A DNA stretch of 64,000 bases from Macrostomum lignano (GCA_002269645.1 NIVC01000356.1:186001-250000), one strand, 5' to 3'. Shown: positions 31,601 through 59,737, numbered from the stretch's first letter. A program made the numbers and translations. Notes: generated by a model not told the origin, from the letters alone.

Positions 31601-34600
31601 CGACTGTTGAGTCCACAAGCGCATCACGTGAGTTGTAGAATCGTTAAAGATTCGCGAAAAGTTGTTATGTGGGTGCTAACTTTCTAGTATCTAAAGTAGA
31701 CTTAATAGAGTTTTCATAAAGGCGAAACGCGACTCTAATTCATTTAAGTGACGCAGATGCGCTTTAGACGCAACTCAGTGATTCTACAGCGACTCAGTGG
31801 CATGTCTCAGATACAACTCTACAGACCCAGAGTCGTTCCAGAGTCGCAAACAATGAAACGCTTCAAATTGACTCTTAGTGACTCTTTGACAACTTTTTCG
31901 GCGATTTTTACCGCGACATCTCGTCGTTTTAGAGTCGTCTAGAGTCACTACTTTACTTATTCCATCGGGTAAATCGAATGATAATAAAATCTGCTAAAAT
32001 TCAAAACGAATCCTGAGCAGAGCTCCGACTCTCTGAGCGACCCGTCCTCGCCCCGGAAGAAGCCGGGCCGCCGCGTCCGAGCGGCCGGCGGTGGCTCCAA
32101 GAAGCAAGCCGCAGGCGGCAAGCGGGCCAAAGCTGAGGAGAAGCCGTGGTGGGACCAGGGCGGCGGCGGCGGCGGCGGCTTTGATGTCAACTCCAGCGGC
32201 GGCTCCTCCGAGGTGGCCCAATTGGGCACCGGTAAAAATTTCCTGCGACAGACTCGCGATCCGCCGCAGGTGAGACGGCCGGTGTGCATATTTGGTGTGT
32301 CAGCAGTTGGGGGGAGGGGCTTCTGCTCTCCGCCCATGTTATCCCGTGCAACTCCTGTCTACCCTGTGCTCTTATCCAATCCTGCCAATCCTGACCCTTC
32401 ATCTCAACTCCCATCAACCCTTCATCTCAACTCCCATCAACCCTTCATCTCAGCTCCCATCGATCCTTCATCTCAACTCCCATCGACCTTTCATCTCAAC
32501 TCCCATCAACCCTTCATCTCAACTCCCATCAACCCTTCATCTCAGCTCCCATCAACCCTTCATCTCAGCTCCCATCAACCCTTGACCCTTCATCTCAACT
32601 CCCATCAACCCTTCATCTCAACTTCTTTCACCCTGCAGGGCCAGGCCCCCCGCCTGGACGACACCCTGCAGCAGTCGGGCGTCGCCAGCATCGGCCGCGT
32701 GGAAGACAGCGACGATTTCGCATTAGAAGCCCAGGAGGACCCGCAGCAGAGATTGGGGCGCGCGCCAGTAGCGACTGACGACGACGAGCTCCGCCTGCAG
32801 CTCACCCGGAGCAGCCTCGGCGATTCGGAGACTCCGGCGGCTCCGCCGATGCGCGGCTACGCTGGCAACAGTCGAGACGCTGACGACCTGACCACGATGG
32901 ACACGGAGTCGGCGGCGGCGGCCGACCCTTCGGCCGGTGGTCTGGCCGGCTTCAAAGGCAAGCCGTCAATGCTATCGAAGGTGTCTCTGCTGGAGTCGCT
33001 CGATTCGTCGTCTCAGCAGCTTCAGCAGCCGAGCTCGGCGCAGCAGCCGCAGGAACAGCACCATGGCGACACGCTGCACAGTCAGACCGACATCAGCGCC
33101 GTCCGCGACGCCTACAAGCGCCGGCTGGACACCCTGGAGGAGTCCACCGACCAGCGACACAGCAAGGCTACCACAGGATTTTTTGCCTCTGGTTTGAACA
33201 GCCTGCCGAGCGATCAGATCCCGGAGCCTGGGCAGCAGCAGCAACAGCAGCAGCAACAGTCGGGGAATGTGGGGGGCGCCATGACGGCAACCGCTACTCA
33301 GTCATTTGGAATGCAGGTGAGTAATCTGAAAGCTGCCAGATTGAAAACCAGGATTGCCAACGCTCTGATGTGCCAGCGGCCCAGGCTCGATTCCAAGTGC
33401 AGCCACATTAATTTGGGGCTGAATTAGAAACTGGGCTTGGCTCTGCTCGTGCAGTTGACGCCATTGAGGCCCAACCCCCAATGCACAGTGAAGTGTACAT
33501 GCCTAACGATAAATAAAGTCAGGGCCGCTGTACACTCCTGTGTGAGTGAGTGTGTGCCTGTGCGTATGACTGCGTACGTATCCGCGCGCTTCTGTGCCTG
33601 CTCAAGGGAGTCAGCGGAATGGGCAGCAATGCCTCTCGCCGGTTGTGCGACAATGTCGCTTAAAGTGCGTCATGGTGCACACAGCTCCCCCAGTATTTTT
33701 TAAATCTAAATTCAATATAGACAGTTGCTATGGCAACCAGTATAAACTTCGGTATCCAATGCCGCACAATTTGCCAGGTAATCCGTCCTGCGAACAAAAC
33801 CGAGCAGAAGGAGATGAGCATCGACGATCTTCTGGCCGAGCACGACGAGGTGTTGACAGCTCGGCCAGACTCGCAGCGGCACCCCCAGCTCACCCCGTCG
33901 CCGCCTCCGTCTCCGCAGCAACAACAGCAGCAGCAGCCGCAGGCGGCCCAGCGTCGACACAGACAAGCAGCATTTGACGAAACAAAGATTGTAGCCAATC
34001 CCAAGGTGGTTCGACCGCCGCGAGCCCCGGCTGCTGCTGCTGCTGGGGATGCTCCGAAGAGGCCGCAGAAGCAGCAACAAAAGCCGGCTGCTGGCAAGAC
34101 AAAACAGCCGGCGGGGCCGCCGCCACAGGGTTTGAAATTTGGCCACGTGAAAAGCTCCGGTTACGGTAGGGGAGGCCAGGCCCAGCACCAGCGGCCTCAG
34201 TCTATGCCTGCTCAGGCTTCGCAACAGCAGCAACAACAGCAGCAGCAGCCGCAGAAGCAGAGACAGTCGCAGCAAGTGCAGCAACAACAACAGCAGTACC
34301 TCCGCGAAGAACTTGACGAATGGCGGGATCTGCTGCGCGCCGAGAAGGCTCACCGAGTTAAGCTCGAGTCCGACCTGCGCTTGATGGAGCTGGAGAGAGC
34401 CAAAGAGGCTGAGGCCGCTCGCCGGAAGCACGAACAGGAGGTGCAGCAGTTGAGGCAGGAGATCTGCACCCTGGAATCTCGGCTGGAGGTTGAGCCGCAG
34501 CAACAGCAGCAGCAACAGCAATCGGTGTGGCGACTAGTGAAGCAGCGACCTCTCGGCCCGGATGTCACCAGAGAGGAGGTGGACCAGCTGACCAATCAGA

Positions 34601-37600
34601 TGCGCGAGCAGGAGGAGCTGCTGGCCGGCTATCAGAAGGAGAATGAGAGGCTCTACGCTGAGCTGAAGTCGGCGAAGGCCTCTGGCAAGGGGCTGGCAGA
34701 TGCGCTCAGCGGTCAGAAGCTGCACCTGGAGCAGGTGGGTGGCGGCTACTCTGAGACTGGGTGGCCCCTATAAGTCTGAGAATCGCCTCATTAAGACTCT
34801 GAGAATCGCCCCATTAAGCCGCTGAGAATTGCCCCATTAAGCCACTGAGAATTGCCCCATTAAGCCGCTGAGAATTGCCCCATTAAGCCGCTGAGAATCG
34901 CCCCATTAAGCCACTGAGAATCGCCTCATTAAGCCACTGAGAATCGCCTCATTAAGCCACTGAGAATTGCCCCATTAAGCCGCTGAGAATTGCCCCATCA
35001 AGCCACTGAGAATTGCCCCATCAAGCCACTGAGAATTGCCCAATCAAGCCACTGAGAATTGCCCCATTAAGCCACTGAGAATCGCCTCATTAAGCCACTG
35101 AGAATCGCCCCATTCAGCCACTGAGAATCGCCCCATTAAGCCACTGAGAATCGCCTCATTAAGCCACTGAGAATCGCCTCATTAAGCCACTGAGAATCGC
35201 CTCATTAAGCCACTGAGAATTGCCCCATCAAGCCACTGAGAATCGCCCCATCAAGCCACTGAGAATCGCCCCATTAAGCCACTGAGAATCGCCCCATTAA
35301 GCCACTGAGAATCGCCCCATTAAGCCACTGAGAATCGCCTCATTAAGCCACTGAGAATCGCCCCATTAAGCCACTGAGAATCGCCTCATTAAGCCACTGA
35401 GAATCGCCTCATTAAGCCACTGAGAATTGCCCCATTAAGCCGCTGAGAATTGCCCCATTAAGCCACTGAGAATTGCCCCATTAAGCCTCTGAGAATTGCC
35501 CCATTAAGCCGCTGAGAATCGCCCCATTAAGCCACTGAGAATCGCCTCATTAAGCCACTGAGAATCGCCTCATTAAGCCACTGAGAATTGCCCCATTAAG
35601 CCGCTGAGAATTGCCCCATTAAGCCACTGAGAATTGCCCCATTAAGCCACTGAGAATCGCCTCATTAAGCCACTGAGAATCGCCTCATTAAGCCACTGAG
35701 AATCGCCTCATTAAGCCACTGAGAATCGCCCCATCAAGCCACTGAGAATTGCCCCATCAAGCCACTGAGAATTGCCCTATCAAGCCACTGAGAATTGCCC
35801 CATCAAGCCACTGATAATTGCCCCATCAAGCCACTGAGAATCGCCCCATTAAGCCACTGAGAATCGCCTCATTAAGCCACTGAGAATCGCCTCATTAAGC
35901 CACTGAGAATTGCCCCATTAAGCCGCTGAGAATTGCCCCATTAAGCCGCTGAGAATCGCCCCATTAAGCCACTGAGAATCGCCCCATTAAGCCACTGAGA
36001 ATCGCCCCATTAAGCCACTGAGAATTGCCCCATTAAGCCACTGAGAATCGCCTCATTAAGCCACTGAGAATCGCCCCATCAAGCCGCTGAGAATCGCCCC
36101 ATTAAGCCACTGAGAATCGCCCCATTAAGCCACTGAGAATCGCCCCATTAAGACTCTGAGAATCGCCTCATTAAGACTCTGAGAATCGCCTCATTAAGCC
36201 ACTGAGAATTGCCCCATCAAGCCACTGAGAATTGCCCCATCAAGCCACTGAGAATTGCCCCATCAAGCCACTGAGAATCGCCCCATCAAGCCACTGAGAA
36301 TCGCCCCATCAAGCCACTGAGAATCGCCCCATTAAGCCGCTGAGAATTGCCCCATCAAGCCACTGAGAATTGCCCCATCAAGCCACTGAGAATTGCCCCA
36401 TTAAGCCACTGAGAATCGCCTCATTAAGCCACTGAGAATCGCCCCATTAAGCCGCTGAGAATTGCCCCATTAAGCCACTGAGAATCGCCCCATTAAGCCA
36501 CTGAGAATTGCCCCATCAAGCCACTGAGAATTGCCCCATCAAGCCACTGAGAATTGCCCCATTAAGCCACTGAGAATCGCCTCATTAAGCCACTGAGAAT
36601 CGCCCCATTAAGCCACTGAGAATCGCCCCATTAAGCCACTGAGAATCGCCTCATTAAGCCACTGAGAATCGCCTCATTAAGACACTGAGAATCGCCTCAT
36701 TAAGCCACTGAGAATTGCCCCATCAAGCCACTGAGAATTGCCCCATCAAGCCACTGAGAATTTCCCTATTAAGCCACTGAGAATCGCCTCATTAAGCCAC
36801 TGAGAATCGCCCCATTAAGCCACTGAGAATCGCCCCATTAAGCCACTGAGAATCGCCTCATTAAGCCACTGAGAATCGCCTCATTAAGCCACTGAGAATT
36901 GCCCCATTAAGCCGCTGAGAATTGCCCCATTAAGCCGCTGAGAATCGCCCCATTAAGCCACTGAGAATCGCCTCATTAAGCCACTGAGAATCGCCTCATT
37001 AAGCCACTGAGAATTGCCCCATTAAGCCGCTGAGAATTGCCCCATTAAGCCACTGAGAATTGCCCCATTAAGCCGCTGAGAATTGCCCCATTAAGCCGCT
37101 GAGAATCGCCCCATTAAGCCACTGAGAATCGCCTCATTAAGCCACTGAGAATCGCCTCATTAAGCCACTGAGAATTGCCCCATTAAGCCGCTGAGAATTG
37201 CCCCATCAAGCCACTGAGAATTGCCCCTTAACTTAACTTAGCTGCAGGGCTGTCCCGGAGGGGACACAGCGGGAAGGCGCGGGCGCCCATTCCGCTAGTC
37301 CCTGAACGGCCGACGCGTCGCTATGGACGGAGGGTTGGCGCCGCCCAGGGAGGTCCCCCAGTGTCGCCAGCAGCTATGGTGCTCTCTGGAAAGGAGAGTT
37401 CAGCCCTGCGGGTGGCCCGAAGGTAGCGCATGAGCTGATTAAAGTTTTCGGGTTTGCACGCTTCAGTAATAGATGTGTGTGGCCCGAGGTAAGTGAGTCT
37501 GGCCGCGTGAAGGCGGGACAGATGCTGACGAAATGCTCAGCGGTTTCGTCACCTGAGTTGCAGAAACTACAGGTGGCGTTGGTGGCGTTGCCCTGCAGGT

Positions 37601-40600
37601 ACTGGTGCCTGGAGAAGCAGCCGTGACCAGAGAGGGTCATGGTGGCAGCCCGGATGTCTCTGCGCGAGAGGCGCAAGAGGAGCTTCCGGAGCTGGTGAGA
37701 GGGCTGAGGGACAGCGCCTCTGGATTGCCTGCAGTTCGTGCGGTTCGCCCAAGTCGAGCGGTGCTGAGTCCTGATCCACGCTTTGATGCGCGAGTCGATG
37801 ACACAGCCAGGAATCGGGACAAGAGGTTCGGGGCCGAGAGAGGAGCCGGAGGCACCAACTTTTGCAAGGGTGTCAGCCAACTCATTTCCTCGGATCCCCA
37901 CATGCCCCGGAACCCACTTAAGGGTAATTTTGTTGGCGGAACCCAACACATTGAGGAGTTTGATACAGTCAAGGACTGTAGCAGAGTTGGTGCTGCAGCC
38001 ACTGATGGCGTGCAAGGCAGCTTGGCTGTCCGAATGGAAAATGATGTTCTTACCAGTAACGCCAGTGGCGAGAAGCTCTGCAGTGCAGGAGCTGATGGCC
38101 AGAACTTCATTTTGGAAAACACTGGAGTTGACCCCAGTGTATTGAGCGTGGGTAGCGATGACCCTCCCGTTCAGAAAGATTCCAACACCAAAGCCGGTGT
38201 TGGCTGACTGCTTAGAACCGTCGGTGTAGCAATGAAGCTCACCAGGGTTCCAATGGTCATTGATGTTATCGCGCGAGTCGATAGCTACGGAGTAGCGCTG
38301 TCTCAGGTTGAGCGTTGAGGCAATGCCATCGGTGAAGACGCGATTGGCCTGACACTCGTTGAGAAAGTTGAGGCACAGATCGCTATGCGGGACAAGGTTC
38401 CGCTTAGCAGGTGCTCTCATGTAAATGAATTTGACGCCGGCATCAATTAGACGCCGCGTCGTTCTAGCCGCCTCACCCCTGATGAAGAGGTCAAGAGGCG
38501 GAAGATTAAGAAAGGCCCCCATGCCAGCAAAGGGCGTGGACCTGGTGGCGTTGCAGATGAGCCTACACGCTCTGCCTTGGATCGTGTTGAGCAGGTCTGC
38601 ATGGCTTTTGACCTGGGTAGCGCTAACCCAGACAACAGAGGCGTACGTAATGGCAGGTCTAACTACGGAAGTATAGATCCACCAAAGCCGCTTTGGGGAT
38701 AGACCCCAAGAAGTGCCAAGTGCTCGTCGGAGCTGGGCCAGGATGGCTGAGGCACGCTTAGCTTTTGCTTTCACGTGGAAGGACCAGTTGAGCCGGTGGT
38801 CAAGTGTGACCCCGAGACATCTGGTCTGGTGCGCGAAGGCAATATCTCTGCCGTAGAGCTGCAGAGGACGTATGTTCCAGCGTAGTCTGCTGGTAAACAT
38901 AATGGCAACGGTTTTGGGCTCAGAGAGTTCCAAACCATTGTCATTGGCCCAGGATTCTGCTTTGCGGATAAAGCTCTGCATCAGATCCCTGAGCGTGCTG
39001 GGAGACGGTCCTGCCACAATGGCCGTGACGTCATCAGCATACCCGACTTTGAAGACGGGGTCAGGTCGGGAGTCACTCAGAAGAGCGTCCATGACCAGGT
39101 TCCAGAGCGTCGGGGTGAGGACTCCGCCTTGGGGTCCACCCTTACAGACTCTGGTGGAGGCAGTTTGCCCAAGAAGTTGGGCAGTGACCGTACGGTTGGA
39201 GATCATGTACATGATCCACCGTATGAGGGTAGCATGAGCTTTGCGATTTTGAAGGGCCCTCTGAAACGCTTCAAAGATAACGTTGTCGAAGGCGCCAACA
39301 ATGTCAAGAAAGAGAGCCAGGGCGTAACCGTCACCCAGTACCGCCCGTTCAATCTTTTCGACAATCGCATGCAGGGCGCTGTCAGTCGACCTCCCGGTAC
39401 GGAAGGCGTGCTGATTATTGCTGAGGGGCATCGCTGTCAGCTCGCAGGAGAGCAGCCGCCAGAGAATAAGCCTCTCAGTGAGCTTAAGCATTGCTGACGT
39501 TAAGCTAATTGGCCGGAAGGCCTTGACGCTTTGGTAGTCACCCTTCCCAGGTTTGGGAATAAAGACTACTCGAGCTTCAGTCCAGCTTTTGGGAACGTAT
39601 CCCAGCTGGATAGAGGCCCGCATAAGATTGCGGGTGAGTCTCAGGAACGAGGGTATCTTGGCTGCTTCACGAAGGAGAACAGGGTAGATACCATCAGGTC
39701 CAGGAGATTTGAAGGGTTTGAAGGTTCTGACCGCACGAGCGATTAGGTCTTCAGTGACAATGCCCGCCGCTAGGGTGGCTCCATCCATCGAATGGTTGGG
39801 CTCCGGTCTAGCAGTAGGTACCCTCGGGAAGAATGTGCTAAGCATATGCTGAAGCACTTCTTCAGGGTCTTTAGTAAGAGAGCCATCATCTTTTTTGATC
39901 ATGGCTAATTTGGACATTTTGTCCATTGTAAGGGCCTTGACAAGCCTAGAAGTAGGTCTGTCTTGATCCAATTCATTGCAGAATTGGCGCCACTTACATT
40001 CCTTGGCCTTGCGCACTTCAGATTTGAAATTGCGGGAGGCTTGCCGGAAAAGCTCCATGTCCTCCGGGTTTCCGGTCTTCATGGCACGGCGATGAAGGCT
40101 TTTGGCCTTCCGCCTGAGTTTCCCCAGCTCCGGGTTCCACCACGGCGCCGAGGTCTTGCCTTTGTAGGCGCGAGCAGGACAAGCCGCTTCGTAGGCTTTA
40201 ATAATGCAACCTGTCAGCGTCTCAGCCATATGATCCACATCCTCGCAGGTCTCAATCGGACGTAAGTCCGTGAGTTCCTGCAGGTGCAGATCAAGGGCAG
40301 CCTTGTAGGCCGCCCAATCAGTGTTGCGGATATTGCGTCTCCAAGTGATCGGAGACTGGGTTTTAGTGTCCGCGATATTAAAGGCGATAAAGCAGTGGTC
40401 AGACAGGGAGGGCTCCTCAGACCAGACTCTCCACTCCTTGACTCTGTCAAAGAGTCTTGGGGTAACGAGTGTGGCGTCGAGGACCTCGGTCCATCTGCCA
40501 TTATTAAAGGTAGGAGTGCTGCCGCGGTTGCAGAGCATGAGGTTTGTGTTAGAGATGAGGGCCAGAAGCTCCTCTCCTCTAGTGTTGGTATCTTTGCTGC

Positions 40601-46600: not shown

Positions 46601-49600
46601 TCCAATCCCTCCAAAGAATCGCCCTCCAACCCTTCCAGAATCGCCCTCCAATCCCTCCAGAATCGCCCTCCAATCCCTCCAGAATCGCCCTCCAATCCCT
46701 CCAGAATCGCCCTCCAACCCTTCCAGAATCGCCCTCCAATCCCTCCAGAATCGCCCTTAAACCCCTCCAGAATCGCCCTCCAATCCCTCCAAAGAATCGC
46801 CCTCCAACCCTTCCAGAATCGCCCTCCAATCCCTCCAGAATCGCCCTCCAACCCTTCCAGAATCGCCCTCCAACCCCTCCAGAGAATCGCCCTCCAACCC
46901 CTCCAGAATCGCCCTCCAACTCTAGAAAATCGCCCTCCGATCCCTCCAGAATCGCCCTCCAACCCCTCCAGAATCGCCCTCCAACTCTAGAAAATCGCCC
47001 TCCGATCCCTCCATAATCGCCCCCAACCCCTCCCGAATCGCCCTCCAATCCCTCCAGAGAATCGCCCTCTAACCCTCTCCAGAGAATCGCCCTCCAACCC
47101 TCCAGAATCGCCCTCCAACCCCTCCAGAATCGCCCTCCAATCCCTCCAGAATCGTCCTCCAACCCTCCAGAATCGCCCTCCAACCCCTCCAGAATCGCCC
47201 TCCAACCCAAGCTTCCCAAGCCTACAACCCAGCCGCCTCTGCCCAACCCAGGTGCTGGAATCCGACCTCAAGCGTTTCAAAGACGCTCAGGGCCGCCCGT
47301 ACGGGTCGCTGACTTCGCTACAACGCGAACTGGAAGCCCTGCGGGTCCGGCATCGCGAGAAGATGCTGGAAAAAGATCGCGAAATCGAGCGAGTCCGAGC
47401 GGAGGCCGCCAGCGAGGCGGCGCAGACGCAGAACGAGCGTCGTGCGCTCGCCAGAGCCGAGGCGCTGCAGCGCGAGCTTCGCGAGAAACAGGCGGAGCTG
47501 GACCGGGCCAGGCGGGAGCGGGAGGCCGACAAGAACAGGGAGAAACAGGTGGGCTGCTGGACTGACAGATTAAATTTGGCTGGGTTTAGACAGCTTGTCA
47601 CTTTTATCTTTTTGTTACTAATGTCGCTTGTCACACCTATTAAACATGAGTGTCACCTATGCGACGTGAATGTCACACCTGTTAAACACTAACTTCACAC
47701 CTGTTAGACATGGGTGTTACACCTGTTAGATACGAGTGTCACACCTGTTAGATACGAGTGTCACACTTGTTAGATACGAGTGTCACACCTGTTAGACATG
47801 GGTGTTACACCTGTTAGATACGAGTGTCACACCAGTTAGACATGAGTGTCACACCTGTTAGACAAGTGTCACACTTGTTAGATACGAGTGTCACACCTGT
47901 TAGACATGTGTCACACCTGTTAGACATGAGTGTCACACCTGTTAAACAAGTGTCACACCTGTTAGACATGAGTGTTACCTCTTAGACAGCATTATATCAG
48001 ATTCATTTACGTATACCCGACGCGCTCTCCCCCACTCCTCCAGGTCTACTCCGCCAAGCTGCAGACGGCCGTTGAAAAGCATCAACGCCAAACGGACGGC
48101 CTGCGCCAACAGTTGGTTGCCATGGAGACCAGCTTGGCGTCGGCCAGAGCCGAGCTGGCCACAGAGCGCAACCTGGTGGTTGAATCCCGGCGCCGGGCGG
48201 ACGCCAAACTGGCTGAAGTGGCGGCCGCGCACAAGCGCGAACTGGACCGGCTGGTGGCCGAGCACGCCAAGACTTTTGCTGAGTCTCGCGTTGCCGAACT
48301 GCAGGTGAGGGTTGAGGCTTTCTTGGAATATCAGATGCGAAAAGGTTTGGAGTATTCCTTAGGGGTATGAGGCAGTCCCGAGCGATTCATAGCAGCCCTG
48401 AAGAATATGCAGTTGTTCTGAAGGATTTTAAAGTTGTCCTGAAGGATTTTAAAGTTGTCCTGAAGGATTTTAAAGTTGTCCTGAAGGATTTTAAAGTTGT
48501 TCTGAAGGATTTTAAAGTTGTCCTGAAGGATTTTAAAGTTGTCCTGAAGGATTTTAAAGTTGTTCTGAAGGATTTTTAGTTGTCCTGAAGGATTTTAAAG
48601 TTGTTCTGAAGGATTTAAAGTTGTCCTGAAGGATTTTTAGTTGTCCTGAAGGATTTTTAGTTGTCCTGAAGGATTTTTAGTTGTCCTGAAGGATTTTTAG
48701 TTGTCCTGAAGGATTTTCAAGTTTTTCTGAAGGATTTTTAGTTGTCCTGAAGGATTTTTAGTTGTCCTGAAGGATTTGTAGTTGTCCTGAAGGATTTGTA
48801 GTTGTCCTGAACGATTTGTAGTTGTCCTGAACGATTTGTAGTTGTCCTGAAGGATTTTTAGTTGTCCTGTAGGATTTTAAAGTTGTCCTGAAGGATTTTT
48901 AGTTGTCCTGAAGGATTTTTAGTTGTCCTGAAGGATTTTCAAGTTTTTCTGAAGGATTTTTAGTTGTCCTGAACGATTTGTAGTTGTCCTGAACGATTTG
49001 TAGTTGTCCTGAACGATTTGTAGTTGTCCTGAACGATTTGTAGTTGTCCTGAACGATTTGTAGTTGTCCTGAACGATTTGTAGTTGTCCTGAACGATTTG
49101 TAGTTGTCCTGAAGGATTTGTAGTTGTCCTGAACGATTTGTAGTTGTCCTGAAGGATTTGTAAACAAACTAAAGATTTGTAGCTGTCCTGAAGGATTTTC
49201 AGTTGCCCTGAAAGATTTGCTAAGCAATCTTACTCTAAAGATTATTGGGAAAAAGATAACTCTTAATTTGTAAGCACCAACACCTGAATTGGCACCTTTG
49301 TATTAACATTATTAGCAGGTAAAAAATCTGTCTTCTTATACCGATGGCCATTGCTTTTTTGATTTCGTGGGCATCCAAAAAGCCTTTTTTGACATCTCCC
49401 CTAAAAAGTTATCATGTCATGAATCGATTATATAAAAAATTAGTGATGAAAAGCAATTGAAGTTAGGCGACATAAAAATCTTTTTTTTTCATCAAAAATC
49501 CTCAAATGTATGGATAATCTCCAGAACTAGTCTTTAAAAAGTCGGAATTCTTCAGTCCTCAGCGATAGCCGCCGCAGTCACCACCGCCAAGCTTGCAAGA

Positions 49601-52600: not shown

Positions 52601-55600
52601 CGCCAGTCGATGAGCCCAGCTGATGACGGCCAGGGCGTGCTGGACTAGTGCAGGAATCCCACGAAGGCGGCAACTTCAAGGCCAGGCGCGTTTGACGGGC
52701 AGGTGCCCCGTCGTTTGCAGAAGCCCTCCCAGCGTTAGAAGGCGTGTCGGTATGCGTCGCGCGTTCTTGGAGACCATGCGGCGCGGAGCAGAGAGCGGAG
52801 CGGCCCAATGACGCGGTGAGGCGGCAGCGCCGGACCTGAAACAAAAGCAAAAGCGCAGAGCAGAAACTGGCAGCACGACAAGCAAATTCGGCGGCGGAGA
52901 AATTCTCGAGGCCGCCGTACATGCGAAAAGCAAAGTTCAGGAGGCCTTCGCGAGTATGGAGTCTAGAACCCGGGTCACTAAACACTTGGAAAGCACCAGG
53001 GACATGAAAGGCTCTGATCTCGACGTTACGCCGCATGCAGAGGAGCGCAACAGTCTTCATGACTTCGTTGACCAGCTGACAGCCGGAGGACAGCCGGTTG
53101 ATGAGGCCAGCCGCGGCGCTGCTGTCGGTGTACACGGTAATCTTGGCGTGCTCGAACGCATCCGACTGACGTAGGGTGCACAACAAAGGGGCCAGCGCTT
53201 CTTTGAAGTTGATGTGCAGCGCGCTGAAAGCAGATCCAGCGTCTAGCTGCCAATTCACATACAGCAATTGACGCCGCCGTTCTCCCAGATGACGCAGCAT
53301 GCGCCCTCGAGACATGGTCAAACTCGATGACAATCCACCGGAAGAACTGCGGCCAGATAGACGCACTGAAAAGAGTGGCAACAGCTTGTCTCCACCAGCT
53401 CAGGGTGCGCCTAAGGCCGTCGGACTCCGAGATACGACATCCGTCATGCTGGTAGAACAGCTTTAGCAGGTTGCGGAGGAAAAACGCGCGCGCCTAGCAA
53501 CGGTGCAGAACCAACTACAGTCTTCGATCAGGTCTGTCAGGGCAAGGCGCTTGTTGGCCGGCAGGTTCATTTTGCCCGTGCGCGTGTCAAACTCAACACC
53601 CAGGAAGATGAGACGTTGGCTGGGTGGGACGACCTTTTACCAGTTAACTTCGAAGCCGAGCTCCTGGACCAGAGTCAGCAGACACTCGTAGGCTGCAGAC
53701 CTCTTGGTGGGGGCCGTGACGGCCCAGTCGTCGAGATAAGCACAGATACCATGGAAGCCGCTGCGTTGCATCGCCCGGGTGATTGCTTGTGACAACCGTT
53801 TAAAGTGATACACCGACGCCGCAGCGCCGAATGGCAGACGGGTGTCCACCAGGTAAGTTGGCTGCGTGCTGTCGCTGAACTTTACTTGATAAACGGGTTT
53901 ACGGATAAACGGGCAGGGCTCGGTACGCTTCCTTCAAATCAATCTTCGCAACGAAAGCCCCCGACTGCAGCTTCGATGTCAAGTCGTTGATCGTCTCGAA
54001 TTTGATCTTGTAGGGAGCCGTAAAGTGGTAGTTCACACTGTTGCCTTCCGGAGCGCTACAGTCGTGGATGAGCCGAACATTGCCATCCGGCTTGGCGCTG
54101 GCGCCAATAGCAGACACTTTCGTGGGTTTCTTCGCGATGCGGCGGTAGCGGCATAAATCAATCTCGCGGTATATCTGCCTTTTAACTTTACTCTCGTTCA
54201 GCTTGCATTAGCCGTAGTTCTCGACCTCGGATTGGTGGAATGAGTTATCGATGGTCAGGAAAAATCCCTCGTGGAGGCCTTGCGAAAGAAATTCACGGTA
54301 ATCATCCTCTTGGAGGACTCTGGACCAAGCAGCTAGATTCATGTCAGCGTTGTTGCTGCGAAGAGTGTCAGGGATAAAAGTGGAGTTGAAATCAGTAGGA
54401 GGCCGTGTGGGGCCGCACGCGGCGTGATTCGCTACCCCGCCGCTCTCTAGTTTTTTGTCGTCTGTATCCCGCCAGTTCCGTGCCGGTGTCACGTCTTAAA
54501 AAAATTCTGCGTTTTTTTATTCGGCTGAATGAAATAAGACGACAAACGTATTTGGCCAAATACTTTTCAGTTATCCAAACTCATTTGGTCATCTTGAATT
54601 CTCTCACTGAGCAGAAACTATCTTATGCCTTATTTTATTTGTCTTAAAATATTCCAAGTTTGCAACTTTGCAACTTTGCAAACGTTGCAAGTACATTTCA
54701 ACAAAAAGACAACAACAATCCAGAACTGAATGATTTGTACTCGTACACAAAATTAAATAATGCACTTTATAATATTGTAAAGACTTGATGTTAAAAATAA
54801 ATTAACCGCAAATAGCTAATTTAGCCTGTCCTTAAGATAAATCCTGCACGTTTTAAAGATACGCAAATAAATTTCGAGCATGTTCAATTATCAAACTTCC
54901 CTATCGTTTAAGTCCTACTTTCTAGATCTTCCATTAATTTTACGTTGCTCTAAATCACAAAGTTTCTAGTGAGTCAAGTGAAAAACCTGTTTTAGTCTCT
55001 AGTTCATACCAAGTACTTTAGATACTTGTATAGGTTGTTGCTTAGGACGACACGTTCGACCGTGTATACCTTAGTACACCACGGTGTCTTCAGTTCGCCG
55101 CCTTTCCGATCGTCACGGACATAGTTCCGCAGCAGCACCTTGTCACCGACTTTAAAGCTGAGGCTGCTGGCAGACGCGTACTTCTGAACGTACACGCGTA
55201 TGCTTGCACAAATTTTGTCCTGCCGTCCCCTTGAAATCGCCCCTGCAGCTTTGATAGGGTGGAATTAATCCTCCTGATGAGCTGCTCCAGTCGCAGAGGT
55301 GTGATCTTCTTAGATCAATCGACAGATCTTTTTGATCTTCCACCTCCAGGCGACACTCCGTTGACCGATGGCGCTTATTCTGACATCATAGAACAGCTGC
55401 TGGCCCTCGTACCTGAAGTTGCGCTCCTTTTGTCGAATCTTGCTGTTGAAGTTGTTCCTCTCCTTGGTTGTTGTCAAAGACGCAAGGATTTCGTTTGTAT
55501 GCGCCACTAAGCAAGTAAACTTTTATATCCGAATACGCGACAGACATACTTATGTCTCTTCAGTGTAGTCGATATGTTTAAACTTGCAGTTATTTATAGG

Positions 55601-58600
55601 TAACGTGTTGCGTAACAGAATGTAAAATTATACGTACATATACTGTCTAGATTTAGATGTACTGAAAGTCAGAGAAACTTTTAAAAATTTGGTGGCAGAC
55701 TTGCTGTCGTGCCGTATTTAATCTAGGCCCAAATAAAATAACGCATCCAAAGTTATTCAGCCGAATACTTTTCTGCCTAGGATAATGGTTCGCATAACAG
55801 GGACTCCGTGTGGTCCGGCTGCAAGTATATGCGGCACACGTGAGCATACTTGCAGTTTGGAAAACGGCAGCCGGCTGGTAGGTTGGTAGGTTAAAGACAC
55901 GACAGATATGGATGCCCTGAGCTGTCCTGGCAGTTGTCTGTGGCTTTGGCGGACGCTGCTTTTTCCCTGTTGCCTGCGGAGCTACCAGATGCCAAGCGAT
56001 AAGTGAGAAGCTCTGCTGAGCCCAAGAGCACCCCGTGGAGGCTTCTGCGCAGTCGAGGAGCTTGCTGATTTGCACGTTGTATTGCATGTATTTTGAGACT
56101 GTTTCATCCGTGAGTTGTCCCGATTTGAGGAGACAGGAGGAGGATCCGGGCGTTTGCCATGATTCACTGCCCGACAAACCTACAGCTAGGTAAAGTCAAT
56201 ATTGAATCCGATTAATTAGGAGTATAGTCGTACCAGAGGAAGAAAAGCGTCACCAGCAACGCGCTCAAATCAGCAACAAAAAAGATTTTGTAGTTGCTCT
56301 GAATGGTTTGCTCAGCAATCCTAATCGGAAGATTTAGTGCGAATAAAGAAAACTCAAACATACACTGCAATAGATGATTCAAGCTCTCGATTGTTTATAG
56401 TTTATAATTTATAGAAAAATATTTATTAATGAAAAACAATTAAAGAAAACCGAAAAGAATTTCATTAACCTAATGTCTGTCAGCAAAAAATCAAATTTAT
56501 AGATTCCTAACAGTTACAACTAGTCTTTAAAAATAGCCGGTCCTCAGCGATAGCCGCCGCAGTCTCCACCGCCAAGCTTGCAAGATTCCTTGGACCCGTC
56601 GGGGTTTCTGCACTTGAACTTTGAGCTGTTGCAGCTCACAACTGATCCGCCGCAGGTCCAGAAGCCCTTGTACTTGCAGCGGCAGGCCTTGAAGGGCGGA
56701 GCGGGAGAGTAGATGGTGCAGCCGCCCCTGTGATAGTCGCAGTCGCAGTTGTTCGGCGAGCTCACGTCCGACCAAGCCGTCGGGATGGCGTCTTCAGGCC
56801 GGGCGAGTCGGAGTCCGAGGTTTCCCGCCAGCTTCTTGAGCAGTCCAGGCCGATTTGTGATGACTCCGTGCACTCCCAGGTTGATGTAGGACTTCATGGA
56901 GGACTCTTTGTCCAGCGTCCAGATGTAGGTCAGGCCGATCTCGCCGTTGCGAACGCCGGCCACAGCCTGCCTGATGCCGCTGTAGTAGGTACCGAGCGCG
57001 CAGGCACTGATTCCGGTGCCGAATGCGCGCTTCCGGGTGAACCTGGACAGCATGGCAGCCACGGAGCTATACTTATCGCCCTCCTGGTCGAAGGCGAAGT
57101 AGTAGCGGTCTTTGTTGCTGAATCCGCTGGCGGTCTTTGCCGCGGCGTAGACATACTCGAAGCAGTTGATCTTGCCGGCCGAGATGACGACGTTGCCGCG
57201 GTAGCCGTTACCGAAGAGCTCTCGCTCCACGAGCCTGGCGACGTTGGCGCCAGCAGTGGCGAGTCTGTCGCCCCACTTTGGGTTCACCTTGCCGTCCAGG
57301 ATGACGAGAGCGAGTCCAGGCAGCCTCGCCATGTGGCGCAGGTGGCTGGCAGCACTAGCACTGGAGCCCCTGCCAGAGCAGCCCCTGAGCGAGTGGCTGC
57401 AGATGTGGTAGCTTCTCGGGTGCGGACAACTGCATTCGCAGAATCCGCGGTGCTCGAACTCAGTCGGGTTGCCGCGTCCGTCGAACTGGATGTCCACCTC
57501 CACAGCGTTGGCGCCCTGCCTCATGGACCAGTCGAGCGAGTGCGGACTGTTGGTCATGTGGGCGATGATGTAGAAGGGGTCTCTGGTCTTGGCGGAGTCG
57601 AGTGTCGCGGCTAGCAGCAGAAAGAGCAGCGGGACAGTGCACACATTCAATACTCTGAGGCCTGACATAGCAGAAGGCTTTGGAGAACTCAAATTTTTTT
57701 TCGGACGAGCTATCAAACCTTATTGGAGCGTAGATCGCTTGTAAATTAGGTCTTATTTATAGAAACTTTTAATGGGGTGGAGCTCCGGTGCAGGTGCATC
57801 GCATTCGTTTACGTCACCTTATTATCAAGGCGTTGAGTTGTTACGAGCTACCACATAATGGGGGCGTTGTTATTCAATATTGTACTATAATAAAGTTTAT
57901 GTAACATACAATCAGCTGTCTGCTTTTGATAGTAGCATGACTCAGCCATATTTGGCAGTTTCAACTTAACCGGTCGACTTATCATAGCCACCCGTTATTT
58001 GGACTGTATCGTGCAGATATTGCAGGTGGTATTTTCACTTAAACATCGGTTATCGCTTTCAAAGTTTAATAAGAAGTCCCAAAGAAGAAGAAAGCTGCTT
58101 CAGTTGCCATTTTTCGGAATGACGGCACGCTCGCTGGTGGCGTGTAATGACTACTGTTATCGAGTGTTTTTTGAAAGCCAGTTAAACCCTTGATAATAGC
58201 CACGATTGACGACGATACGACAAACTAGAGCTCTGAGGTCGTAGCGGTGCTAATTTCATATAAACAGTTTTATTCATAAATAAACTTAGGTTCTAATTAG
58301 TAAGCTCGAAGTTTAGAAAGGTTTCACTGAACACACTGCCAAACTTTCTATGGGGCTCCATAACTATAACGCAACTGTTGCATTCTATGCAGCCTATTTC
58401 CTGTTGTAAACTTGACCGTGAACGAATCGCTAAAAAGTCATTGAAAACAACTCACTAGTGAGTCTAGCGACTTTGGGGCGACTCTTGTGACTTAAACGAC
58501 TCAAACGACTGCAATGCGACGGAGAGGCGACTGTTGATTCACGAGCGCATCACGTGAGCTCTGATTGTAAAATCGAGCACTGATTGTAGTTGCAAAAAAA

Positions 58601-59737
58601 AGTCGTCCAAGAGCCGCTGTGTCAACGCTTAACTTTCTACTAACTCGTTTAGACTAAACAGATTTGTTATTGCATGTAAAATGCGATTCTAATTCATAAG
58701 GTGACGCACACGAAACTCGGTGATTCTACAGCCATTCTAGCACACCTCAGATACCACTCTATGGCCCCAGAGTCACTATACGAGCGTAGAAGCGCCCCAG
58801 AGTCATGTTCATCGTCCCATAGTCGTTTCAGAGCTGCAAACATTAAAACGCCTCAAATTGACTCTTTGACGACTTTTTGGCGACTTTTGGTGACTTTTTG
58901 GTACCGTAAAATATCATCGTTGTAAAGTCGTCTATAGCCACTTTTTTCCTATTTTATCTGTGTTACCTGCGAAGACTCTGGGCGCGACGCAAGCGACTCT
59001 AGGACGCTTCTTGGCGTAGGTACCGTTTTCATTGGGATATTATAAGATATTTCTGTCTAGTTATATCATAAATGAATCTATATATGTGTGTATCATATTC
59101 ATTTATGAGTTTTCACCGATGTAGAATGTAAAATTTTGAGCATCAAATATTGTTGAGTTACTTCACCAACATTTGTGTTTTCTAGAATTTCTTTAAACTA
59201 AAACTTAAAGATTCCAAAGTTTGGCATTCAAATATCTTTCCGAATTCGATCTCAAATGTTACACTGAAGGCTCGCCTGGACTCTCAAGAGGCCGTCATCG
59301 AGCATCTCAAAGCCCAGACGGCGGCGTCATCGTCTGCTGCTGAGCCGGCCGAACAGCTTCGCCAGCGAGAACGCGAACTGGCCGCCGAGGTTGCCGAACT
59401 TCGGGCCGTCCTGGCGGACGAGCGCGGCGCGCACACGCCCCAGATGCGGCAGTTCGTAGCGCTGCGCGATCGAATCAAACAGTTGGAGGCGCGTCACGTG
59501 GAGCGCGAGCGCGGAGTTGAGCAACTGCTCAGGGAAACTCGCGCCGCCGCGCGATCCGACGCCCAAGCCGAGGTGACGCGCTGGCGCCAGTTAGCTGAGA
59601 CTCGGGCGCGTCAAATTGATCAGTTCAGAGCCGAGCTGGATCTCATACTGGAGGTGCTGCGAGAGCTGCAGAGGCGCGGTGTCAGCCTGCCGGTGCCGCC
59701 CGGACTGAAAGACACACTGAGCGGACTGTCTGGCTAG
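28641..59737 (+). CDS. CEP162: Centrosomal protein 162-like; exons 28641-28706 (tentative), 32021-32269, 32639-33316, 33778-34734, 44044-44406, 45056-45289, 46203-46439, 47252-47548, 48044-48304, 59270-59737 (about 1269 aa)
   Basis: Coiled-coil protein with segments I recall from CEP162: QEELLAGYQKENERLY, LQRKMTWFVENQRLVDKD, RIKDLERQVRELESIL, and C-terminal QIDQFRAELDLILEVLRELQRRGV. The N-terminus has FEKFM...PWW. All introns are GT-AG, phase 0, and every internal exon length is divisible by 3. The orthology call is from memory and needs BLAST. Confidence 0.8.
28999..29361 (+). mobile_element. tRNA-derived SINE, full length, with 9-bp TSD
   Basis: Pol III A-box-like TAGCCCAGCGG (29008-29018) and B-box-like GGCTCGATTCT (29051-29061). 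A-rich tail AATAAAAAATA. TSD CCATGTGCA at 28990-28998 and 29362-29370. A second copy lies at about 33356-33693. Confidence 0.85.
30648..31955. mobile_element. MITE-like dispersed element whose left arm is expanded into an 80/81-bp tandem array (about 12 copies, 30673-31649)
   Basis: The unit GAATCGTTAAAGAGTCATTGAAAACAACCTACTAGTGACTCTAGCGACTGTTGAGTCACAGGCGCATCACGTGAGTTGTA occurs once in the homologous copy at 58424-59036. TAGTGACTCTAGCGAC is inverted against GTCGTCTAGAGTCACTA (about 31935-31951). Confidence 0.7.
32380..32625. repeat. 23-bp pyrimidine-rich minisatellite (CCTTCATCTCAACTCCCATCAAC), CEP162 intron 2
   Basis: Tandem copies run into the acceptor at 32638. Confidence 0.9.
33356..33693 (+). 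mobile_element. Second copy of the tRNA-derived SINE (5' head partly lost), CEP162 intron 3
   Basis: Colinear with 29026-29345; keeps B-box-like GGCTCGATTCC. Confidence 0.85.
34770..37227. repeat. 23-bp satellite (CTGAGAATCGCCCCATTAAGCCA), left part, CEP162 intron 4
   Basis: About 105 copies, interrupted by the LINE. Confidence 0.95.
37374..41060 (-). CDS. LINE ORF2: AP endonuclease + reverse transcriptase + RNase H + CCHC finger
   Basis: APE motifs LIQEP, GGDLNAHH, LDAT, SDH. RT motifs SPGPDG, FRPISL, QHAFR, LDIVGAFD, PQGGVLTP, GYADD, LGVTLD. RNase H motifs YTDGSK, NEVLA, HSDSQAA, KWVPGHVGIRGNELAD. Finger CSFCNSGDETAEHFVSIC. A probable 1-bp deletion near 37505 shifts the last about 60 codons. 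Confidence 0.93.
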   Translation of the reverse strand: MTKLHAAKGATFCLQINLQHCVSASVNLMKIAELYRPGLILIQEPWMRNGKLPNIPSGYSDFYVCGPGNSRPRAAILAASHLQAWLRTDLSDGDLCVIQSNHFSPRTCLVASVYIPGDRDPAPESLLRLAQYCESQNAELCLGGDLNAHHKHWGSKDTNTRGEELLALISNTNLMLCNRGSTPTFNNGRWTEVLDATLVTPRLFDRVKEWRVWSEEPSLSDHCFIAFNIADTKTQSPITWRRNIRNTDWAAYKAALDLHLQELTDLRPIETCEDVDHMAETLTGCIIKAYEAACPARAYKGKTSAPWWNPELGKLRRKAKSLHRRAMKTGNPEDMELFRQASRNFKSEVRKAKECKWRQFCNELDQDRPTSRLVKALTMDKMSKLAMIKKDDGSLTKDPEEVLQHMLSTFFPRVPTARPEPNHSMDGATLAAGIVTEDLIARAVRTFKPFKSPGPDGIYPVLLREAAKIPSFLRLTRNLMRASIQLGYVPKSWTEARVVFIPKPGKGDYQSVKAFRPISLTSAMLKLTERLILWRLLSCELTAMPLSNNQHAFRTGRSTDSALHAIVEKIERAVLGDGYALALFLDIVGAFDNVIFEAFQRALQNRKAHATLIRWIMYMISNRTVTAQLLGQTASTRVCKGGPQGGVLTPTLWNLVMDALLSDSRPDPVFKVGYADDVTAIVAGPSPSTLRDLMQSFIRKAESWANDNGLELSEPKTVAIMFTSRLRWNIRPLQLYGRDIAFAHQTRCLGVTLDHRLNWSFHVKAKAKRASAILAQLRRALGTSWGLSPKRLWWIYTSVVRPAITYASVVWVSATQVKSHADLLNTIQGRACRLICNATRSTPFAGMGAFLNLPPLDLFIRGEAARTTRRLIDAGVKFIYMRAPAKRNLVPHSDLCLNFLNECQANRVFTDGIASTLNLRQRYSVAIDSRDNINDHWNPGELHCYTDGSKQSANTGFGVGIFLNGRVIATHAQYTGVNSSVFQNEVLAISSCTAELLATGVTGKNIIFHSDSQAALHAISGCSTNSATVLDCIKLLNVLGSANKITLKWVPGHVGIRGNELADTLAKVGASGSSLGPEPLVPIPGCVIDSRIKAWIRTQHRSTWANRTNCRQSRGAVPQPSHQLRKLLLRLSRRDIRAATMTLSGHGCFSRHQYLQGNATNATCSFCNSGDETAEHFVSICPAFTRPDSLTSGHTHLLLKRANPKTLISSCATFGPPAGLNSPFQRAP
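41084..42660 (-). CDS. LINE ORF1 (gag-like), split by one frameshift near 41790
   Basis: ORF 42660-41686 overlaps ORF 41755-41084. Shifting in the GCTCTTTTCTTCG run gives FLREGQRPKTIPYVVFVP and a continuous product ending 24 nt before ORF2. Confidence 0.7.
43122..44030. repeat. 23-bp satellite, right part
   Basis: Same unit as 34770-37227. It ends about 13 bp before the exon 5 acceptor. Confidence 0.95.
44438..44995. repeat. 34-bp minisatellite (CCCTCCCTGATCCTGTCAGCTAGTGAGGCTGTCA), CEP162 intron 5
   Basis: Tandem copies visible. Confidence 0.95.
45345..46100. repeat. 26-bp minisatellite (CATGATGGGGAACTGCTCAGATGCCA), CEP162 intron 6
   Basis: Tandem copies visible. Confidence 0.95.
46545..47210. 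repeat. About 22-bp minisatellite (CCCTCCAGAATCGCCCTCCAAT), CEP162 intron 7
   Basis: Tandem copies with indel variants. Confidence 0.9.
47630..47985. repeat. 22-bp minisatellite (CACCTGTTAGATACGAGTGTCA), CEP162 intron 8
   Basis: Tandem copies visible. Confidence 0.9.
48410..49215. repeat. 20/21-bp minisatellite (GTTGTCCTGAAGGATTTTAAA), CEP162 intron 9
   Basis: Tandem copies visible. Confidence 0.95.
49559..50680 (-). CDS. Secreted sphingomyelinase D / phospholipase D toxin-like protein (GDPD-like SicTox family) with a Cys-rich C-terminal domain, copy A, 373 aa, intronless
   Basis: Signal peptide. Family motifs IAHMTN (catalytic His), GANAVEVD (Mg-binding E/D), HRWLCDC (second His loop), LDGK, YIWTLD, GVNGIITN and plug-like RLAKPGD, then a 10-Cys tail. 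Confidence 0.9.
   Translation of the reverse strand: MSGLRVLNACTVPLLLLLAATLDSAKTRDPFYIIAHMTNSPHSLDWSMRQGANAVEVDIQFDGRGNPTEFGHRWLCDCSCPHPRSYHICSHSLRGCSGRGASASAASHLRHMARLPGLALVILDGKVNSKWGDRLATAGANLARLVERELFGNGYRGNVVISAGKINCFEYVSAAAKTASGFSNKDRYYFAFDQEDDKYSSVAAMLSRFTRKRTFGTGISACLPGTYYSGIRQAVAGVRNGEIGLTYIWTLDKESSMKSYINLGVNGIITNRPGLLKKLAGNLGLRLAKPGDAIPTARTDVSSPNNCDCDYHWGGCTISSPAPPFKACRCKYKGFWTCGGSVVSCNSSNLKCRNPDGSKESCKLGGGDCGGYR
51457..51650. repeat. 61-bp tandem repeat, about 3 copies
   Basis: CACTCGGTACACATTGAAACTCACTCAATTGCCC starts at 51457 and 51518, with a variant at 51579. Confidence 0.85.
52042..56200 (-). mobile_element. Decayed tyrosine-recombinase (DIRS/Ngaro-type) retrotransposon: gag, RT, RNase H, truncated YR
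   Basis: Gag finger ICRVFN...GCRFPNCKYAHVCR (about 55800-55915, across a frameshift). RT RLIHDCSAPEGNSVN, AKIDLKEAYR, DTRLPFG, AYLDD, FLGVEFD. RNase H HINFKE, YTDS, HVPG...DPGSR. YR GFFGLLRCANL...RIRVSKTN. Multiple stops and frameshifts. Boundaries are approximate. Confidence 0.82.
54518..55767 (-). mobile_element. Internally deleted Gypsy/Ginger-like integrase remnant inserted between gag and pol of the YR element
   Basis: Minus strand gives KERNFRYEGQQLFY, then RLI*EDHTSATGAAH (integrase Zn-binding-like), then FKVGDKVLLRNYVRDDRKGGEL (GPY/F-like C-terminal region). The DDE core is absent. A 13-bp inverted repeat TATTCGGCTGAAT lies at 54518-54530 and 55755-55767. Confidence 0.55.
56544..57668 (-). 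CDS. Secreted sphingomyelinase D / PLD toxin-like protein, copy B, 374 aa, intronless (true ATG at 57668)
   Basis: Same motifs as copy A. Manual alignment gives 23 substitutions plus 1 indel versus copy A. Confidence 0.9.
   Translation of the reverse strand: MSGLRVLNVCTVPLLFLLLAATLDSAKTRDPFYIIAHMTNSPHSLDWSMRQGANAVEVDIQFDGRGNPTEFEHRGFCECSCPHPRSYHICSHSLRGCSGRGSSASAASHLRHMARLPGLALVILDGKVNPKWGDRLATAGANVARLVERELFGNGYRGNVVISAGKINCFEYVYAAAKTASGFSNKDRYYFAFDQEGDKYSSVAAMLSRFTRKRAFGTGISACALGTYYSGIRQAVAGVRNGEIGLTYIWTLDKESSMKSYINLGVHGVITNRPGLLKKLAGNLGLRLARPEDAIPTAWSDVSSPNNCDCDYHRGGCTIYSPAPPFKACRCKYKGFWTCGGSVVSCNSSKFKCRNPDGSKESCKLGGGDCGGYR
57754..57761 (-). promoter_or_regulatory. Putative TATA box of SMaseD copy B
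   Basis: TATAAATA on the minus strand, about 85 bp upstream of the ATG. Confidence 0.5.
58424..59036. mobile_element. Second, non-expanded copy of the MITE-like element at 30648-31955
   Basis: Colinear blocks GAATCGCTAAAAAGTCATTGAAAACAAC, GCGCATCACGTGAG, CTAATTCATAAGGTGACGCA, AATTGACTCTTTGAC. Its end CGTTTTCATTGGG is the near reverse complement of CCCATTGAAAACG at 30648. Confidence 0.65.

Follow-up and report, generated by a model that had tools for sequence, protein, structure and literature searches.

Two probably functional Aquatic-clade SMaseD/PLD genes, antisense to CEP162 and nested within its last intron, in the flatworm Macrostomum lignano

Introduction

Spider members of the glycerophosphodiester phosphodiesterase (GDPD)-like sphingomyelinase D/phospholipase D (SMaseD/PLD) family, the SicTox enzymes, turn lysophosphatidylcholine and sphingomyelin into cyclic phosphates (PMC3756997). 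The actinobacterial and fungal AT-like PLD toxins, among them those of Corynebacterium and Arcanobacterium (9yd8), belong to the same superfamily and share its catalytic core; their catalytic loops are short and devoid of conserved Cys residues (PMC6299612). A third, ‘Aquatic’ clade, which includes Platyhelminthes, was described by Cordes and Binford in 2018, with a flatworm plus rotifer clade supported by 98% bootstrap and with a plug motif that is recognizable yet divergent (PMC6299612). In this work, a stretch of 64,000 nucleotides from Macrostomum lignano (assembly GCA_002269645.1, contig NIVC01000356.1, 186001–250000; the window, with all positions counted from its first letter) was analyzed, in which two genes of this family, here copy 1 and copy 2, lie on the minus strand within the last intron of the CEP162 gene. 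The original prediction, made from the sequence alone, had taken the host to be a probable flatworm, in agreement with the source of the contig.

For M. lignano, Table S2 of the 2018 study lists contigs LFJF01002150 and LFJF01005372 of an earlier assembly and four more, recording a single exon, a SignalP ‘Y’, transcript coverage and, on some contigs, two open reading frames (ORFs); transcripts of M. tuba are listed as well (PMC6299612). According to the same source, the M. lignano genes carry one C-terminal 10-Cys domain, CD-search assigned the ORFs to cd08576 with E-values of 5e-19 and 4e-22, and some second ORFs on other contigs are broken by a frameshift or an intron (PMC6299612). The pair described here is of this family, and its genes are essentially those of the LFJF01002150 and LFJF01005372 entries, with nothing different in kind; it shares with the Aquatic clade the signal peptide, the single exon, a long Cys-rich loop, an apparently divergent plug, one C-terminal Cys-rich repeat (DUF-B) and the affiliation with the flatworm plus rotifer subclade. 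Thus, the novelty of the pair had been overstated: presence in M. lignano, single exon, positive SignalP call, transcript coverage and paired ORFs were all on record (PMC6299612). Our finding was essentially published in 2018, and the nested arrangement is an ordinary one. A search of the literature on Macrostomum and this enzyme family retrieved nothing besides Cordes and Binford, and the tags Mlig011944 and Mlig032886 appeared in no paper text.

That study is silent on the CEP162 position, the deletion polymorphism and the absent gene call for copy 2 (PMC6299612). New in our analysis are an intact copy 2 that has no gene model in the Mlig_3_7 annotation; the nesting in the last CEP162 intron at three homeologous or allelic loci, with a presence/absence polymorphism of copy 2 caused by a deletion that runs into a retroelement; the lack of support from intron content and codon composition for a recent foreign origin; and a confidently predicted Cys-rich domain that has no structural neighbor in the PDB and also occurs behind an astacin domain.

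Family assignment and active site

A phmmer search against the PDB matched residues 23–278 to the Loxosceles intermedia enzyme 3rlh with E = 1.8e-21, which puts homology to SicTox far beyond chance. Other full-length matches included 4rw3, 3rlg, the Sicarius terrosus structures 4q6x and 9die, and L. laeta SMase I (1xx1), while ordinary GDPDs scored E 0.01 or worse. An AlphaFold2 model built from a 48-sequence alignment reached a mean predicted local distance difference test (pLDDT) of 91.6 and a predicted template modeling score (pTM) of 0.86. Foldseek placed it closest to the Sicarius and Loxosceles PLDs in the PDB (E ~1e-19, target-normalized TM-score 0.81–0.82), followed by the Arcanobacterium PLD (TM 0.67–0.70) and then by GDPDs (TM 0.71 or lower). 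In a Pfam scan with a copy lacking PF27711, only weak GDPD and GDPD_2 matches close to the cut-off were obtained, at the C-terminal strand; the precomputed match to PF27711 (SMase_D_PLipase_D) is graded ‘faint’.

Residues H36, E56, D58, H72, D124, K126, W249, D252 and N271 are found in both copies and are conserved in 46–48 of the 48 homologs, H36 being present in all 43 rows not truncated at that point; K126, W249, D252 and N271 are the supporting residues of the set. The original prediction of a signal peptide together with a complete SMaseD/PLD active site was borne out for both copies. The segment from β1 (AHM/GHM) to EVD/ETD aligns to SicTox 3rlh without gaps, giving the short β-α-1 loop by which the family is recognized (at least six residues shorter than that of GDPDs), and a catalytic loop occupies the place of the GDPD-insert domain in a TIM-barrel fold nearest to SMaseD structures. 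The plug motif is defined by an Arg–Asp salt bridge, an Ala and a Pro, and a Trp packed into the barrel; the corresponding region after the last strand, GLRLAKPGDAIP, with the consensus G-L-x-L-A-x-P-x-x-x-I-P, contains R, A, P and D and no Trp. Judged by sequence, both genes are members of the GDPD-like SMaseD/PLD family (cd08576/PF27711).

Comparison with the three described groups makes the differences visible. The SicTox proteins 3rlh, 1xx1, 4q6x and 9die are only 23–26% identical to the Macrostomum PLDs, which have a longer catalytic loop with extra Cys, a plug without Trp and an added C-terminal DUF-B. The AT-like enzymes are more distant (16–17% identity at the TM-scores given above) and lack DUF-B. 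Canonical GDPDs (PF03009) share the ancestral fold, as reflected in the weak Pfam matches of the C-terminal strand; compared with them, the Macrostomum PLDs lack the GDPD-insert domain, have the shorter β-α-1 loop and show a weaker structural match than with SicTox.

Placement in the Aquatic clade

The Aquatic clade is distinguished by a catalytic loop longer than that of ST-like (spider/tick/scorpion) enzymes, which keeps the ST-like Cys residues and adds at least one further Cys pair, and by one to four C-terminal repeats of ~70 residues with 10 conserved Cys (DUF-B). In the Macrostomum PLDs, the loop H72-RWLCDCSCPHPRSYHICSHSLRGCSG is longer than the SicTox loop, its residues C76, C78, C89 and C96 are invariant, and C80 is present; the near-invariant C222 matches the class-II disulfide partner. 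A distance-based neighbor-joining (NJ) tree was computed from 265 catalytic-domain columns and rooted on Loxosceles. Copy 1 paired with Mlig011944g2 (bootstrap 83) and was joined successively by copy 2 (85), Mlig032886g2 (100) and P0002 (93), and the group of M. lignano paralogs, P0002, Rotaria, Adineta and further sequences received 99%, in line with the published 98%. Bacterial sequences from metagenome-assembled genomes fell elsewhere, the Macrostomum PLDs lay outside SicTox on a long branch, and the deep nodes were without resolution.

These features argue that the Macrostomum PLDs are members of the Aquatic clade. The ‘brown-spider-toxin family’ of the original prediction thus holds for the GDPD-like SMaseD/PLD superfamily and gives way, on loop, DUF-B and tree position, to a separate clade; the phylogeny proposed there as a check was carried out as the NJ tree, where the grouping is with rotifers and apart from SicTox. 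Membership of the ST-like clade was considered and rejected, given that the catalytic loop departs from the 15-residue length typical of that clade, extra Cys are present, and the tree position is outside SicTox.

The gene pair and its CEP162 host

Both minus-strand ORFs were recovered intact at the predicted coordinates (Table 1), and they form the local, intronless paralog pair that had been proposed, with 93% identity at the protein level, 95% at the DNA level and 27 amino-acid differences. The Nei–Gojobori estimates are dS 0.117 and dN 0.030; the resulting dN/dS of 0.26 indicates purifying selection on both copies since their separation. The ORF of copy 2 also continues upstream from its ATG to a TTG start, reaching 57716. 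Residues 9–20 form a hydrophobic core in the N-terminus (mean hydropathy 2.4–2.7), and beyond it hydropathy revealed no membrane-spanning segment in the PLD proteins. Copy 2 retains every catalytic residue and all 18 Cys and carries a conservative D77E substitution in the near-invariant ‘CDC’ motif; copy 1 carries E71G. From sequence, both ORFs are intact and probably functional genes.

Upstream of copy 2 (57746–57790, minus strand), a TATA-like motif, TATAAATA, is located ~12 nt upstream of the start of paralog homology, and copy 1 has a pyrimidine-rich tract at the same position. The two copies may accordingly differ in their promoters or in 5′-end processing.

Table 1. Features of the PLD locus and minisatellite arrays of the window (window positions)
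Feature	Position	Strand	Remarks
Penultimate CEP162 exon	48044-48304	+	Donor CAG/GTGAGG; from annotation and splice sites
Last CEP162 intron	48305-59269	+	10,965 nt; holds both SMaseD genes, 20-nt satellite and retroelement remnant
Last CEP162 exon	59270-59737	+	Acceptor ...CTGAAG/; stop 59735-59737, the annotated gene end
SMaseD/PLD copy 1	49559-50680	-	Intronless coding sequence, 373 aa; signal peptide, TIM-barrel PLD domain, one DUF-B; annotated in GCA_002269645.1
Signal-peptide-like N-terminus of copy 1	50609-50680	-	About residues 1-24 (MSGLRVLNACTVPLLLLLAATLDS); hydropathy, low-pLDDT helix at residues 6-21
DUF-B of copy 1	49562-49786	-	Residues 299-373; 10 conserved Cys; profile and alignment
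5′ leader of copy 1	50681-50745	-	~65 nt, common to copy 2 (57669-57745); paralog homology ends upstream
SMaseD/PLD copy 2	56544-57668	-	Intronless coding sequence, 374 aa from ATG; no gene call
DUF-B of copy 2	56547-56771	-	Residues 300-374
20-nt minisatellite	48397-49219	.	~340 nt downstream of copy 1; single-unit remnant ~240 nt downstream of copy 2
Degraded retroelement between the PLD copies	52158-54207	-	Reverse transcriptase fragment and RNase H-like ORF
Block deleted in sister CEP162 loci L005 and L007	53056-58197	.	~5.1 kb; holds copy 2 and reverse transcriptase part of the retroelement
Minisatellite arrays, among others	1981-3926, 6586-8279, 10301-11385, 23786-25308, 30672-31650, 34776-37231, 43122-44031, 46570-47208, 48397-49219		

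The NCBI annotation shows a plus-strand gene that spans the locus, ends at 59737 and encodes a 1265-aa product. Its identity as CEP162 is taken from the precomputed Pfam matches of this product (CEP162_helical_1, CEP162_helical_3, CEP162_coil_mid and CEP162_C). A scan of the exons against a Pfam copy without the newer CEP162 models gave only coiled-coil noise, and a protein search with the 189-aa translation of a coiled-coil exon returned 8000 low-complexity candidates, none of which reached a score. The GT-AG junction 48304/59270 joins the last two exons in frame (...RVAELQ/ARLDSQ...), and the intron outside both PLD genes has a GC content of 45%. The same nesting was found at two further CEP162 loci, L005 (NIVC01000282, 1270 aa) and L007 (NIVC01001588, 1275 aa). 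The gene models of GCA_002269645.1 are presumably transcript-derived.

It is therefore supported by the annotated span, the in-frame exon join and the repetition at L005 and L007 that, as originally predicted, both PLD genes lie whole and antisense within an 11-kb CEP162 intron, the last one of the annotated model. Nested genes on the opposite strand of introns are common in animal genomes, and the layout here (a complete gene, on the opposite strand, in the intron of an unrelated host) is that of metazoan nested genes in general, with nothing unusual about it. Nor is nesting required for the PLD family, since the Mlig032886 paralog is free-standing. This paralog (L006, NIVC01000720.1, 10001–11122; 89% amino-acid identity) is flanked by two unrelated genes, one of 282 aa and one with Arm repeats, and its homology to the nested copies comprises only the coding sequence (CDS) and 19 nt upstream.

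Clustering at 90% grouped copy 1 with the M. lignano proteins PAA86380.1 and PAA66113.1 (BOX15_Mlig011944g2 and g1) and PAA94061.1, PAA77840.1 and PAA77821.1 (Mlig032886g1–3), all named ‘hypothetical protein’ or ‘GP-PDE domain-containing protein’. For copy 2, the locus table contains no called gene, and no recorded product has exactly this sequence; the Mlig_3_7 annotation appears to lack this copy. The expectation that annotation would overlook the genes is hence right for copy 2 and wrong for copy 1 and its homeologs. In total, the M. lignano family comprises at least three gene types over at least four loci. Nothing in the contig of the closest relative outside M. lignano (L008), such as a poly(A) tract, proves that it is a transcript.

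Duplication and loss of copy 2

High-identity homology between the paralogs covers 49555–50742 and 56540–57742, i.e., the CDS and a leader of 65–77 nt. A weaker match was detected in the 3′ flank, spanning roughly +190 to +370 nt (local score 64; highest score after shuffling 29), and takes in the satellite edge. The sister loci L005 and L007 hold only an ortholog of copy 1, with 98.1% and 97.9% amino-acid identity, respectively, and lack the ~5-kb block listed in Table 1. The counterparts of the breakpoint map to L005 6916–6976 and to ~6535–6595 of L007; the two loci are 98.8% identical around the junction, and the breakpoint is common to both. As a separate observation, L007 carries a 4.3-kb tandem-repeat insertion of its own (1534–5804).

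The block cuts into the degraded retroelement, whose reverse transcriptase fragment (53640–53933, ‘AYLDDW’) matches RVT_1 with E = 3.4e-5. An ORF of 407–413 aa with RNase H-like motifs (‘YTDSS’ ... ‘AFHVPGAFQVFSDPGSR’) runs continuously across the deletion breakpoint in the window; this long ORF had no Pfam match. By eye, the C-terminal region of the retroelement resembles a tyrosine recombinase (DIRS/Ngaro-like).

At the CDS level, copy 2 is 95.2% identical both to copy 1 and to L005, and copy 1 is 98.9% identical to L005. The uninterrupted ORF at the breakpoint, together with a position of copy 2 outside the pair of copy 1 and L005 in the tree (bootstrap 83–85), makes the two-copy intron the older state. 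The converse, insertion of the 5-kb block, was ruled out by the ORF reading across the breakpoint and by copy 2 being older than the split of copy 1 and L005; no terminal repeats were found at the block edges. The two-copy arrangement would thus predate the split of the CEP162 homeologs or haplotypes, and the sister haplotypes would then have lost copy 2 by the 5-kb deletion.

Predicted activity and role

After cleavage of the signal peptide, the enzyme would be secreted. By homology with SicTox, E56, D58 and D124 would hold Mg2+, and H36 and H72 would serve as the acid–base pair; the head group of a lyso- or sphingo-phospholipid would be cleaved by intramolecular transphosphatidylation, yielding a cyclic phosphate lipid. 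Given the cyclic-phosphate chemistry of the spider enzymes, such a product is the best guess, by analogy, for the Macrostomum PLDs (PMC3756997).

With high probability, the locus holds two paralogous, probably functional, secreted PLDs of the Aquatic clade, encoded by ordinary antisense nested genes whose two-copy state is the older one. Several points weigh against this interpretation. The extrapolation of substrate, product and metal dependence starts from enzymes only 23–26% identical. The SicTox tyrosines beside the catalytic His (...YTYH...), which we take to be part of a choline-binding aromatic cage, align to E, F, and G or E in the Macrostomum PLDs, and with these residues not conserved the head-group preference may differ. 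The sequence upstream of copy 2 is its own and carries TATAAATA, which copy 1 lacks; expression, above all that of copy 2, is a prediction. Finally, bootstrap support for the branching order, 83–85%, is moderate, and gene conversion between the copies could distort it.

The best-surviving alternative, in our view unlikely, extends the ‘toxin-like effector’ of the original prediction and holds that the proteins are gland secretions that serve in catching prey, in digestion or in defense against microbes or predators, damaging membranes in the manner of dermonecrotic toxins. It draws on predicted secretion, the intact catalytic machinery, an expanded family under purifying selection and a fold nearest to venom PLDs. 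DUF-B, moreover, also stands behind the protease domain of an astacin (P0059), a protease type often present in digestive and venom secretions. The Hydractinia homolog is specific to feeding polyps (PMC6299612). Against these points, toxicity has not been demonstrated for any protein of the Aquatic clade, and other members hint at non-toxin roles, namely brachiopod shell matrix and, for Physarum, a candidate cyclic phosphatidic acid synthase (PMC6299612). Furthermore, the Macrostomum PLDs fall outside the ST-like clade, there is no evidence of their venom use or toxicity, in contrast to SicTox, and no expression, localization or activity data for them in M. lignano were found in the searchable literature. 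The secretion signal and the intact active site of the effector proposal therefore stand, and its toxin role is possible but unsupported. M. lignano, which is tractable by RNA interference, in situ hybridization and transgenesis, represents a reasonable system for a first functional assignment in the Aquatic clade.

We regard it as improbable that one or both copies, copy 2 being the likelier, are non-functional. This view can point to the lack of a gene call for copy 2, to the L005 and L007 haplotypes, which can dispense with it, to D77E among its differences from copy 1, and to Table S2, where some second ORFs on other M. lignano contigs are interrupted (PMC6299612). On the other side, the ORF of copy 2 is full-length, the dN/dS of 0.26 is maintained over a dS of 0.117, the catalytic residues and 18 Cys are kept, D77E is conservative, and a TATA-like motif lies upstream.

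Origin of the genes

The original prediction read the lack of introns as a sign of retroposition or horizontal origin. Relatives of the genes do not bear this out. The Rotaria homolog is intronless (1011 nt for 336 aa), and so is a 54%-identical relative on a 151-kb contig. In the clam Mercenaria mercenaria (L004, CM038765.1), the gene spans 33.8 kb, and its terminal exon (L004 38527–39843) encodes residues 31–373 and a second DUF-B, so that the whole catalytic domain and both DUF-B repeats share one exon. The Daphnia and Mnemiopsis homologs have one or two exons (Table S2, PMC6299612). Given the intronless relatives, the lack of introns is a family trait and no pointer to retroposition or a recent horizontal origin. 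The GC content at third codon positions (GC3) is 0.81 and 0.80 in the two PLD copies, compared with 0.745 for the pooled CEP162 exons (range 0.64–0.81) and 0.75 for a nearby leucine-rich-repeat ORF, and is thus host-like. With a single coding exon typical of the family, host-like GC3 and presence at two or more M. lignano loci as well as in M. tuba, the proposal was set aside.

A recent arrival, either as a retrocopy of an intron-containing parent or by recent transfer from bacteria, is accordingly very doubtful. It would fit the absence of introns in the PLD genes, the restriction of high-identity paralog homology to the CDS and ~20–77 nt of 5′ leader, and the existence of proteobacterial and myxobacterial homologs at ~43% identity; lateral transfer was also inferred somewhere in the history of the clade by Cordes and Binford (PMC6299612). 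Yet no parent gene with introns can be seen, genes of the clade as a rule consist of a single exon, and a poly(A) tract and target-site duplication were sought at both copies, with neither found. The weak but significant 3′-flank homology, up to about +370 nt, points instead to duplication at the DNA level. Rather than bacteria, it is a probable Macrostomum-type sequence (65%) and rotifers that come closest, and the genes are also present in M. tuba, so any transfer would have been ancient.

An assembly artifact or contamination, with bacterial or rotifer DNA misjoined to a flatworm contig, has a negligible probability: homologs do occur in bacteria and rotifers, which are common in cultures and metagenomes, but the contig is 656 kb long, the PLD genes in it have exons of a metazoan gene on both sides and host-type satellites and retroelements around them, the arrangement is repeated on three independent contigs, and the earlier ML2 assembly and transcript data are independent sources for the genes.

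The Cys-rich C-terminal domain

The 10 Cys of DUF-B are invariant or near-invariant among the homologs. When modeled alone, the domain reached a pLDDT of 84 and a pTM of 0.66, with two β-hairpins and two short helices. Sequence comparison gave no match in Pfam and, with a profile, none in the PDB, and a structural search of the PDB with the modeled fold found no neighbor (best E 3.7, TM 0.22). The profile built in this work detected DUF-B in 81 of the 97 retrieved proteins, at one to four copies each. In P0059, a 608-aa protein from a JGI metagenome, an astacin metalloprotease domain is followed by four DUF-B repeats, from which it follows that DUF-B is not confined to the PLD family. Run against a large protein collection, the profile retrieved mostly fragments of 80–150 aa and no partner domain beyond astacin.

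This distribution fits a portable extracellular binding module, and the probable role of DUF-B is to anchor the enzyme outside the cell or to target it there. A bolder proposal, which we consider speculative and rather unlikely, is that DUF-B would be a new disulfide-rich fold and a portable module for the extracellular targeting of secreted hydrolases (PLD and astacin), with the Macrostomum PLDs acting as gland-secreted digestive, defensive or adhesive effectors that make cyclic-phosphate lipids. If true, the Aquatic clade would gain its first members of defined function, and flatworms an equivalent of a venom enzyme. P0117 and P0127, short proteins consisting only of DUF-B, are recorded under the names of Endozoicomonas sp. 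ALE010, a bacterial symbiont of marine animals, and of the fungus Beauveria bassiana, an odd distribution.

Other features of the window

An upstream CEP162 intron contains a 1228-aa ORF of a non-LTR retrotransposon (37374–41060, minus strand) with endonuclease, reverse transcriptase and RNase H, apparently intact. A 446-aa leucine-rich-repeat ORF (16809–18149, plus strand; LRR_8 E = 6e-27) is possibly a single-exon gene. The window is dense with minisatellite arrays of 10–80-nt units (Table 1), which account for spurious long ORFs in several frames; several of the arrays, located in successive CEP162 introns, share the core ‘GAGAATCGCCC’.

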